Below are positions 9,598-26,550 of a stretch of DNA of 64,000 nt, piece after piece. Both the position numbers and the translations under genes were made by a program. This DNA comes from Macrostomum lignano (lineage: Eukaryota), in the NCBI GenBank assembly GCA_002269645.1, contig NIVC01001310.1:248001-312000 (forward strand), written 5' to 3'. Position 1 is the stretch's first letter. Each line of letters opens with the position of its first letter. Below the pieces are notes generated by a model. It worked only from the letters and a program-made list of their open reading frames with translations, was not told the DNA's origin and ran no database searches.

Positions 9598-12500
9598 ATG
9601 CCATGGAGAAAGCCGCAGGTGCGCGAGCCCAGACGGGTTGCCAACCTGTCGGACGCCAGCCTGATGCGTCGAGAGCAGCTCCGCCAACAAATTGAGGCCA
9701 ACACTCAGCAGTTCCAACGGGAACGTGAGGCGCAGCAGGACTGTCACTTAGGCTGGGACTTTTATTACAATTTCAACGAGTCTAGCTTGGGATTGCCATA
9801 CGAATCGCAACTGGCTCTGGTGTACGTGCATCGCAACTTTGCAGCTCAAGGGGATGGTGCCAGCGACCTAGACGATGTAATTGGCGGCGGCAGCAACGGC
9901 GGTGGCAGCGGCGCTGGAGCGAAGAAGCGAAAAATAAACAACTCGACCAGTAAGTTCCACAAGAATAACCAAAGTCCGCATCGGCAGCAGCATCCTCCTA
10001 TACATTTCGGTCGGCGCAGAGACTCAACTAGCAGCGATGATGAACAACCTGTGGAACAGCTGGACTCGGGGGCGACTGCGAGGCAAGCTATTTTTAGCAT
10101 TACATTATTTATCAACAGCATAGTCGTTACAAGTAGTCCGACTCGAATTGTAGTAGTAGTAGTAGTAGTAGTAGTAGTAGTAGTAGTAGTAGTAGTAGTA
10201 GTAGTAGTAGTAGTAGTAGTAGTAGTAGTAGTAGTAGTAGTAGTAGTAGTAGTAGTAGTAGTAGTAGTAGTAGTAGTAGTAGTAGTAGTAGTAGTAGTAG
10301 TAGTAGTAGTAGTAGTAGTAGTAGTAGTAGTAGTAGTAGTAGTAGTAGTAGTAGTAGTAGTAGTAGTAGTAGTAGTAGTAGTAGTAGTAGTAGTAGTAGT
10401 AGTAGTAGTAGTAGTAGTAGTAGTAAAATGCAACTACTTTTTACTGTTTACTTTAAGACAGTTATAACCCCCGCTGCAAACCCACGCAGACTCACGGCCT
10501 GCTACGGCGGCCACGTGCAGTGGGATCTGCACTTTAAAGATCCGGCCGAATTGAAAAAATCCATCATCAAACTGAACGTGATAGTGGCCAGTGCGCTCAT
10601 GGATCCGCAGCTGAATGTGGATAATTTAGCCGCTTTGGACACTGCTGTGGCTTCCATAGATACTCTGACGCTCAGCTTGGCTGTGAGTGCAGTTCAAGAC
10701 TTGAGTTCTGCTTCAATATTTATACGATTTGCATGCAATTGTTCACCTTCGATGCCAATTGTAGGAAGACATAAATAAGTTGCTGCGAAAATGTCGAATG
10801 GTAAGTTTCTACTACTAAAATGCTTCTGTTCCTAACAACAACAACAACAAAATACGCTGTCAGGATGGCAAAAGTCAGCGTCACAGGGCGCGCTTCATGG
10901 CTTGGGCGCGAACAAAGGCGGCGCCACCGGCAGTGTCCGGGGCGCCGGCGTCAGCCAGCAGACAGTCGACGTAACGCCGAGTTCGCGCTTGACCTCGCCG
11001 GTTCCTAATACGTGTGCATGTATAGCTAAACTACAAGAAGGTTCGAGTCGTTTCACAGTTTGGTTGTGTAGAACCACGTGACGAAAGATAGCTCGGATTG
11101 CGTCATGTCAGGGTCCGCTCAGTCAGTAGCTCAACGGTTAACTCGCCCATCTCTCGCGTCGAACTTTTCGAATTTGCCTGGTGCTTTCCATGCGTTTCGC
11201 ACCCATGAGTGTCAACTCCGAAGCTGGCTGAATACTTTTACAATAAACAGACGTTCGAGAGTCTATCAACGTTGGAAAGTTGTACCGGAGCGCAGAATGT
11301 GTACATGCCCGACGAGTGACGATGAGACCATCGGGGGGCCACTGCACACCTTTTGAGCCTGCCTGCGTATCCGTCTTTATGCTCAGGATTCAAGGGAATA
11401 AGCTGTGACAGCTTGCTTCCTCGCCCAAAGCCCCTGGCGGCTATTGTATAAACAGGGTTAACCATGTCCATTGTATTTTTGTTTTCCTGCTGCAGCCCAA
11501 CTGCCGACGCCTTTCAGATGTACCAATCCTATGACGAGGAGAGTCACCCCAGCCGGTCCAGCCTCATCACGGCCGCACTGGCCGCTATCTGCGAATTCCT
11601 GGGCATCTCTCGCTTGTCCTTCATCGGCCCAATGCTGCAACCCAATCCTGCCTACAGGAAACCCAAGGGTGCCAGCATGCGAACGACGACTGGCTATCCG
11701 AAAACCACCGCCCACTCTTTGGCTGTGGCCTCTGTAAACTTACCTGGCGGCATCAATAGCTCCTCGGCCGGAATGGCGTCACCGGCCCTCCCGCAGGCAT
11801 CGGTCCTGTCTATGCCGGCCGCGCTGCGCACCAGCACGGCATTATTCTCGGCAGGCAGCAGTCAGAAGGTGACTACGTTCAACTTGGAAAATGATCAACA
11901 ATCGTCTTCGAGCGAAATTGAACTTCATGGCAAGTAATTTTTTCAAAAGCTCGTCTTTTGAACTTACTGTACGTAGGGGCGTAGCCTTGAAGGCTTTTCC
12001 AATCTCTTCGCAAAAGTACTGGTATGGCGCTCGCTGGAGCCCCTAATGCTGGCGCTATTGGTGCTAGCGCCCCTTAAAGAAAATGATGCTCCTTCAAAGA
12101 CTCGCTTCATATAATGCGCATCAATTATATAGACCATAGCTACGCCCCTAGACGTCCAGATGTACAAGAATTTAAAGGGCCCTCTTAGGTCTCAGCTAAG
12201 GGTTGAAAATCCACAACTGTTTCTCAACTCATTGCAGACCTAGGCCGCTGTCAAATAAACTGCCCCTACTTAAAAATGACGGAATCTACCGTTGATGTAG
12301 TTCGAATCTTCGACAAATTCGACGATAGACATGTGACAAGTTTTAGCACGATACGTTCCCGTATCGCTAGTTGCTGCTTTCCGTTTGTTCGAATGTGTCT
12401 GCGGCGTTGGGATCTCGGCAAAGAGCCAGCTTGCGGCAAGAGGCATGTACTTTATGATGGCTTCCTTAATTATTTCATTGTAAATGACTTTGCTTCATTG

Positions 12501-26550: not shown

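Follow-up and report, generated by a model that had tools for sequence, protein, structure and literature searches.

A Macrostomum lignano phospholipase D1/2-type gene with both HKD motifs destroyed: a candidate non-catalytic paralogue

What becomes of a phospholipase D (PLD) gene of the PLD1/2 type once both halves of its active site have been lost, and is its reading frame kept nonetheless? The question is raised by a gene on the plus strand of a 64,000-nt stretch of the genome of the flatworm Macrostomum lignano (contig NIVC01001310.1, positions 248,001-312,000; hereafter, the window), where all the conserved blocks of a PX/PH-type PLD occur, in changing frames, between positions 9598 and 26550. 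The start codon (ATG at 9598) and the stop codon (TAA at 26548-26550) were read directly, and between them we trace 17 inferred exons comprising 2031 codons with one base restored. On balance, we favor the interpretation of this gene as a lineage-specific, long-maintained, non-catalytic PLD1/2-derived paralogue, that is, a putative PLD pseudoenzyme.

The hallmark of PLD1/2 is an intact pair of HxKxxxxD (HKD) motifs accompanied by GG(I/L)D and GSANIN, and it is this hallmark that the gene lacks. Motif 1 reads C-H-N-E-K-L-V-V-V-D: codon 15074-15076 is AAC and encodes Asn where the catalytic His is expected, in a column that is 100% His in 96 homologues; the remnant N-E-K-L-V-V-V-D spans 15074-15097, and S-A-V-D at 15116-15127 replaces G-G-I-D, as seen both by direct reading and by alignment. 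Motif 2 reads Y-V-Q-S-N-L-L-I-A-D, with Gln at 25532-25534 substituted for His and Asn at 25538-25540 for Lys (remnant Q-S-N-L-L-I-A-D, 25532-25555), followed at 25574-25597 by G-S-A-R-I-A-D-H in place of G-S-A-N-I-N-D-R. The initial annotation of this locus had described these substitutions, namely HNEKLVVVD and the change of GGID to SAVD in motif 1, and VQSNLLIAD...GSARIA, with Gln at 25532, Asn at 25538 and an Asn to Arg replacement, in motif 2, and direct reading bears out each of them at its coordinate. The HxKxxxxD of motif 2 is kept in 148 of the 149 other best-matching representatives of 50%-identity clusters from 1.84 billion proteins, the lone exception lacking only the His, so the double loss of His and Lys, shared by none of the 149, is truly unusual. 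Pfam PLDc scores are likewise below the gathering threshold. Because the defining catalytic feature fails, we class the gene as a non-catalytic derivative rather than as a PLD1/2 enzyme.

The losses extend beyond the two motifs. In an alignment of the catalytic region of 96 PLD1/2/zeta homologues with both HKD motifs present, 35 of the 52 near-invariant columns (at least 95% conserved) are kept in the divergent gene and 17 are replaced; among columns conserved at 90% or more, 67 of 92 are kept. In alignment numbering, the replacements include W165F, H168N, G182S, G183A and R190V near motif 1, W256V, D258S and Q491E between the motifs, and H610Q, K612N, N627R, N629A, R631H and D638N at or after motif 2. 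Several losses at normally invariant sites had been missed by the initial annotation: DWWLSPE has become CANRLSPE, PRMPWHD has become PRLPVHS, IENQFF has become IENELF, and the R after motif 1 is replaced by V. The replacements fall in the catalytic motifs and in other conserved blocks, while invariant structural residues (Gly, Pro, Trp, Tyr, Ser) persist, a pattern that supports, at the level of sequence, a concentration of residue losses at the active site with the structural invariants spared.

PLD catalysis needs both HKD motifs, and substitution in either of them inactivates the enzyme (PMC4194036). Since both motifs are required and both are destroyed, canonical PLD chemistry is predicted to be excluded, and the residue losses would leave the protein incapable of phosphatidylcholine hydrolysis and transphosphatidylation. 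The protein could still be an enzyme with a non-canonical active site, such as one built on an NxKxxxxD half-site like that of poxvirus F13/p37 and acting on a lipid or another phosphodiester, given that the Lys and Asp of motif 1 are kept as N-x-K-x4-D and that the pocket-forming fold is kept in the predicted model. However, motif 1 has lost both of its Gly residues along with the His, motif 2 is devoid of the His, the Lys, both Asn residues of GSANIN, the Arg that follows and the Asp of RDSE, and the aligned blocks offer no obvious His or Lys that might compensate, so that, with either substitution sufficient for inactivation, we consider retained catalysis highly improbable.

The scaffold of the catalytic domain is nonetheless predicted to persist. 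An AlphaFold2 (AF2) model of a 787-residue catalytic construct reached a predicted template modelling score (pTM) of 0.81, with 378 residues at a predicted local distance difference test score (pLDDT) of 90 or more, and the top 22 Foldseek matches to this model were the catalytic domains of human PLD2 and PLD1 (6ohm, 6ohr, 6u8z; target-normalised template modelling (TM) score 0.86-0.89, E=5e-49), with bacterial and plant PLDs and PLD3 ranking far lower (PLD3, E about 1e-11). The model thus supports retention of the bilobal PLD fold, closest to PLD1 and PLD2, and the confident prediction agrees with the earlier proposal that the structural scaffold is conserved.

Sequence comparison places the gene in the same group. 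The C-terminal 341 amino acids (aa) match human PLD2 (6ohm) with E=3e-46 and PLD1 (6u8z) with E=5e-40, and the nearest relatives are flatworm and vertebrate PLD1/2, as the initial annotation had it in calling the gene PLD1/2-type. Among the nearest are canonical M. lignano PLDs with intact HKD motifs (P0003/P0153, corresponding to Mlig010321, 032186 and 025393, and P0011, corresponding to Mlig002054), which are encoded at separate loci and share 38-43% identity with the divergent protein. In a neighbor-joining tree built from 554 well-occupied columns, the gene falls within the animal PLD1/2 clade as sister to two canonical M. lignano PLDs, followed by Taenia and Clonorchis PLD1; its branch is long (0.75), and this placement has a bootstrap of just 52%, with attraction to other long branches as the main alternative. 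Gene structure speaks to the age of the duplication. In the canonical locus L001 (NIVC01003655.1), a single intron position is clearly shared with the divergent gene (NSSL|LVSL vs NRHL|EVTL), almost all the others being different, and the last 350 codons form one exon in L001 and are interrupted by three introns in the divergent gene; with only one intron position clearly shared, the duplication is old and the gene is not a fresh copy. Similarity between the loop of the divergent gene and that of the canonical paralogue (poly-Gln, KLRR) was considered and found not to be significant. As a separate observation, the canonical PLD1/2-type genes of M. lignano, with their HKD motifs intact, form at least two families and possibly three, each present in several near-identical copies (g1-g4), as seen from L001 (3001-12044) and the proteins P0153, P0011 and P0005.

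Are the modules that would target such a protein to membranes still in place? A PH domain was identified at residues 446-530 by hhalign against a PLD PX-PH profile (probability 96%, E=1e-9), phmmer matches map to the PH region of PLD2 and of other proteins, and AF2 predicts strands at residues 448-482 with pLDDT 80-85. This domain is encoded by exon 5 (12347-12658; HRWLFVADTFLGIM...), along with the paired cysteines of ASCCFPF, the CC pair of ASCCFP aligning with the PLD palmitoylation cysteines. In the basic motif that binds phosphatidylinositol 4,5-bisphosphate (PI(4,5)P2), ARHFVERWNFARHDAVR, R273, R278, R283 and R288 preserve four of the five basic positions, and the remaining one has changed (K286A). 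Within exon 5, at window positions 12400-12560, the neighboring segments KRHVLYDGFLNYF and HRWLFVADTFLGIM are each similar to the beta-1 signature of PH domains, KRWLIVKDSFLLYM, and may have arisen by a small duplication within the domain.

The PX region is a different matter. Upstream of the PH domain, exon 4 (11496-11933) carries the PX-PH linker motif EFLGISRLSFI (ICEFLGISRLSFI, 11587-11625), which is recognised by tblastn against the canonical M. lignano PLD and by hhalign (E=1e-3) and lies in columns that are invariant or nearly so in alignments A2-A5. The PX core itself, tentatively assigned to exon 2 (LTACYGGHVQWDLHFKDPAEL, 10462-10682), could not be verified and is statistically undetectable in the sequence: Pfam finds nothing there, MAFFT aligns the conserved Trp of PX domains to a different site in each of alignments A3, A4 and A5, and AF2 outlines a beta-beta-beta-alpha segment at a pLDDT of just 50-75, the N-terminal model as a whole averaging 51.5. 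Pfam recognises neither PX nor PH in the divergent protein, and because the canonical M. lignano PLD fails in the same way, this absence is uninformative; the failure on the canonical copies also indicates that macrostomid PLDs as a group have divergent N-terminal domains. The designation of the gene as PX-type stands on position and on the one linker motif alone.

If the active site is gone, has the coding sequence been kept since? The modelled coding sequence of 1841 codons contains no in-frame stops, compared with 61 and 64 stops in the other two frames. The GC content is 0.55 in exons and 0.45 in introns, and the three codon positions differ (0.59, 0.45, 0.62), a three-base periodicity. 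We simulated neutral decay by introducing substitutions until 33% of the 52 marked codons had changed their amino acid, in 200 runs; about 0.2 substitutions per site were needed to reach this point, by which time the frame had acquired a mean of 32 stops (range 10-58), compared with the observed zero. Long-term neutrality of this coding sequence is excluded, and recent neutrality is compatible with the data. Set against simulated decay, the stop-free frame means that the gene did not drift neutrally while its active site was being dismantled and, together with the active-site bias of the replacements, indirectly supports maintenance of the coding sequence after the loss of catalysis. This argument concerns past maintenance and is silent on present-day function.

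Several observations weigh against a gene product that is maintained to this day, and the first of these concerns the frame itself. In exon O (25266-25801), which carries motif 2, the frame is off by 1 nt after 25391 (CTCTAC|AGACG), positions 25386-25396 reading CTCTAC-AGACG compared with CTCTACCAGACG implied by the UniProt entry A0A1I8IZT2. A small intron at 25391 was considered and rejected, as the homology to human PLD1/2 is continuous across this point (FLY[R/Q]TIFRG vs FTYRTLCRG) and no donor/acceptor pair restores the frame. Insertion of one C reproduces A0A1I8IZT2 exactly over all of its 358 aa, dead motif 2 included, and because of this exact match the frameshift is absent from an independent source. 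Most likely, then, it is an assembly indel or a lesion of one redundant copy, in a genome that contains 180 Mb of duplicated blocks (PMC5730564), and similar artefactual frameshifts may exist elsewhere in genes of the same assembly.

An error of this kind invites the thought that the dead motifs themselves reflect mistakes in sequencing or assembly and that the gene is an ordinary, active PLD, particularly since exon O holds at least one probable indel error and the Mlig assemblies are PacBio-based. This is scarcely credible, however: motif 2 is identical (VQSNLLIAD...GSARIADH) in the independent UniProt model, the changes are some 17 separate in-frame amino-acid replacements and not indels, and the whole protein shares just 38-43% identity with the canonical PLDs of M. 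lignano, which lie at separate loci.

The second weak point lies between exon 8 and motif 1 (14580-15019), where the splice structure is ambiguous. Keeping the frame at motif 1 requires the uncertain, 50-nt exon X (14726-14775; GTPNVHVLLHPTDPSTG), with its weak donor (gtgctt), and a purine-rich acceptor at 14937 for exon Y (14938-15160), which carries dead motif 1; otherwise, a TGA at 14933-14935, in the frame of exons X and Y and read directly, stops translation if the 162-nt interval remains unspliced. Exon X is the apparent homologue of the PNIKVMRHP strand: in Smith-Waterman comparison with human PLD1, none of 2000 shuffles scored as well, and its NVHVLL is a confident core strand in the AF2 model. 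The first 45 residues of exon Y are modelled as a low-confidence, floppy insertion, and an alternative, stronger acceptor at 15018/15019 also yields in-frame products. An internal duplication around motif 1 was considered and rejected, the candidate copies being dissimilar (score 17, p=0.97) and the segment unrepeated elsewhere. The absence of stops is, moreover, partly achieved by construction outside the homology-supported blocks, because five elements of the model, namely exons 3, X, d and e plus the acceptor at which exon L begins, were placed by inference alone. The description of the gene as full-length accordingly holds for the model that runs from ATG to TAA and is weakened by the out-of-frame motif-2 exon, the ambiguous motif-1 junctions and the undetectable PX core.

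Further points on the same side come from the protein itself. The long poly-Asp, poly-Gln and poly-Gly insertions, together with the unrecognisable PX core, suggest relaxed constraint, and the likeness of the predicted fold to active PLDs is partly expected because the AF2 model was built from an alignment of such PLDs.

The protein databases hold only part of the gene. An exhaustive HMMER search of 1.84 billion proteins (representatives of 50%-identity clusters) returned a single near-identical protein (P0001), which is A0A1I8IZT2, named 'Phospholipase D', from M. lignano; at 358 aa, it covers the C-terminus only, its N-terminal end coinciding with the start of exon N, and all the remaining matches were at most 43% identical to the divergent protein. 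The motif-1 region (178 aa of the N-lobe) had no match among 5.8 billion proteins, including those of the Mlig_3_7 annotation. That annotation is genome-guided and based on RNA-seq, with transcripts below 0.5 reads per kilobase per million (RPKM) dropped (PMC5730564), and the apparent absence of the divergent protein from it hints at low or no expression. We found no orthologue in any other species. A lookup of encoding contigs gave no record for A0A1I8IZT2 or for the window open reading frames (ORFs) at 22231-23163, 26146-26550 and 32766-35204.

Taken to its conclusion, this line of evidence would make the locus a non-functional pseudogene, that is, a divergent PLD paralogue, perhaps already a pseudoenzyme, that is now unexpressed and in early decay, with its first lesions at 25391 and 14933. 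In addition to the 1-nt frameshift in the motif-2 exon, the TGA lying in frame between exons X and Y, where the splice sites are weak, the missing annotated protein for the N-terminal part (the transcript-based Mlig_3_7 set included), the lack of detected orthologues and the many low-complexity insertions, this explanation draws on the redundancy of the genome, whose duplicated blocks allow spare copies to decay (PMC5730564). Yet the independent source of A0A1I8IZT2 lacks the frameshift, 2031 codons are otherwise open across 16 GT-AG introns, neutral erosion of one-third of the invariant sites predicts 10-58 stops where none is seen, codon periodicity and the contrast in GC content between exons and introns are intact, and the replacements are uneven and biased to the active site. 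The frame evidence implies that any death of the gene was recent and was preceded by a non-catalytic coding phase. A pseudogene of this kind is thus a substantial possibility, although not the one we prefer. The proposal of selection for a non-catalytic role survives in part: the frame has outlasted neutral decay, but this copy carries a frameshift and no orthologue was found.

On the preferred reading, that of a long-maintained non-catalytic paralogue, an old duplicate of a flatworm PLD1/2-type gene would have lost both HKD half-sites long ago and been kept as a protein-coding gene. The product may still reach PI(4,5)P2-containing membranes, as PLD1/2 do, and, unable to form the phosphatidyl-histidine intermediate, would act without producing phosphatidic acid, either as a scaffold or as a competitor for the lipids or activators of the two canonical M. 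lignano PLDs. We infer this mechanism from the retention of the targeting modules and from the behavior of engineered dead PLDs as dominant negatives. More specifically, and only tentatively, the gene could be expressed as a full-length, genetically encoded 'dominant-negative' PLD of the PX/PH type, which would tune PLD signalling by binding PI(4,5)P2 membranes, and perhaps activators such as Arf, Rho or PKC, with no phosphatidic acid produced, a possibility that we rate as rather doubtful at present.

Comparison with known systems places the gene among, but apart from, several others. With the canonical PX-PH PLDs (human PLD1 and PLD2, the Mlig010321- and Mlig002054-type proteins, and Taenia and Clonorchis PLD1) it shares the order of an N-terminal region, an FLxxSxLSF linker, a PH domain with paired Cys, regions I-IV and a loop between the lobes, as well as the basic PI(4,5)P2 motif, the predicted fold and the flatworm grouping in the tree. 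In contrast to them, it has both HxKxxxxD motifs and about one-third of the invariant residues replaced, an unrecognisable PX core and a diverged C-terminal ...WT end, and at 2031 aa, with very long low-complexity insertions, it is far larger than the canonical proteins of about 1000-1300 aa.

Engineered HKD point mutants of PLD1 and PLD2 are widely used as dominant negatives. The poxvirus protein F13/p37 has NxKxxxxD, with Asn for His in an HKD-like motif, as in motif 1 here; it is a small viral envelope protein of another PLD branch, with a different second half-site and no PX or PH domain. PLD5, like the gene described here, is a PLD-superfamily paralogue without intact HKD residues that has been retained in genomes, and PLD3/4/5 are described as lacking phospholipase activity (PMC8864472). 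PLD5 differs from our gene, however, in belonging to the PLD3/4 branch and in being a type II transmembrane protein with neither PX nor PH domains, and Foldseek ranks PLD3 far below PLD1/2. In FAM83 proteins (DUF1669), an inactive pseudo-PLD fold is reused as an anchor or scaffold (PMC6008594) and thus provides a precedent for a non-catalytic role, although these proteins are restricted to vertebrates, have a single degenerate lobe and no PX or PH domain, and are not close in sequence to the divergent PLD. Shortened, inactive splice variants of PLD1/2 also exist, of unknown function (PMC4194036). These variants and the engineered mutants resemble our gene in being PLD scaffolds without activity, full-length in the case of the mutants, but they are forms of an active gene, whereas the dead form described here has an old gene of its own. 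No dead paralogue of the PX/PH PLD1/2 branch turned up in the literature searched, in keeping with the statement in the initial annotation that none was known, and the same literature yielded nothing relevant on M. lignano PLD.

The remaining parts of the gene model complete this description. Splice sites were traced by hand; each of the 16 introns has GT-AG ends, the phases are in agreement throughout, and the 2031-codon model has no internal stops once the one base is restored. On the N-terminal side, exon 1 (9598-9949) encodes MPWRKPQV... and ends at a gtaagt donor, and the tentative exon 3 (11123-11298) carries the putative PX helix region (HECQLRSWLNTF). Exon 6 (12819-13480), separated from exon 5 by an intron whose position is common to the divergent gene and the canonical paralogue, completes the PH domain and continues, in the model, into a long acidic, low-complexity linker rich in poly-Asp. 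Exon 7 (13636-14042) comprises a basic linker together with RPFGSFAP, the motif at which the catalytic domain begins, and exon 8 (14320-14580) conserved region I (AQWYLDGG...EIWICANRLSPE), from which DWW has been lost. Beyond motif 1 come two putative loop exons, namely the Gly/Ser-rich exon d (20301-20757; donor gtaagt) and the acidic exon e (21296-21654; donor gtgagg), and then exon L (22474-23155), of uncertain acceptor, which adds further loop sequence, GLDYWN, PRLPVHS (23041-23061) and the basic motif RHFVERWNFAR (23104-23136). The insertion-rich linker of exon M (23904-24322) is followed by region III in exon N (24599-24871; LRSLGRWSGG, FVYIENELFIS), the first exon of A0A1I8IZT2, by exon O and by the last exon (26284-26550), which ends with the stop codon; an AATAAA lies at 26561-26566, 11 nt past the TAA.

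Repeats and mobile-element remnants are scattered through and around the gene. The 5-kb intron after motif 1 contains, at 16964-17290 on the plus strand, an ORF fragment with the helix-turn-helix of a P-element/THAP9-like transposase (Pfam Tnp_P_element, E=6e-14), which is a transposon relic, and, at 17305-18521, a near-perfect 35-bp minisatellite of 34.8 copies at 99% identity. Other arrays are found just upstream of the ATG (8842-9287, 33 bp x 13.5), in intron 1 (10150-10425, (GTA)92), at 24961-25096 (15 bp x 9) and at 25969-26239 (61 bp x 4.4). Upstream of the gene, at 5743-6156 on the minus strand, is the remnant of a Tc1/mariner-type DDE transposase (DDE_3, E=3e-9).

Elsewhere in the window, a paired-like homeobox gene with an intron-split homeodomain (27478-27970, plus strand; Pfam Homeodomain, E=7e-15) begins within 1 kb downstream of the PLD poly(A) signal. 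On the minus strand at 32766-35213, a single ORF of 815 codons with a P-loop (GPAGSGKS) and weak AAA_22, NACHT and nSTAND3 matches resembles STAND-type NTPases in its sequence, and the records contain no protein identical to it. The plus strand encodes, over several exons at 59000-63400, a large GTPase of the dynamin/Mx-like type (Dynamin_N, E=1e-21; Dynamin_M, E=5e-18), and a Cys-rich ORF of 224 codons at 56572-57243 on the minus strand is apple/PAN- and C-type-lectin-like by eye, with no Pfam match at E<=0.01. No Rfam RNA family was detected in the window.

The finding is real and unusual, yet it is restricted to one species and compatible with a dying gene: if unexpressed, the locus would be no more than a pseudogene in good condition, in a genome rich in redundancy. 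If the gene is instead an expressed dominant-negative PLD, the PLD1/2 branch would have its first described pseudoenzyme. PLD1 and PLD2 have been studied almost wholly via phosphatidic acid, and the roles proposed for them in scaffolding and in binding regulators are hard to separate from catalysis. A dead PLD1/2 retained with its membrane-targeting modules would, if confirmed, extend the list of PLD-superfamily pseudoenzymes, which includes PLD5 and FAM83, to proteins of the PX/PH type and amount to an evolutionary experiment on the non-catalytic roles of PLD, in a flatworm that is amenable to RNA interference and transgenesis.

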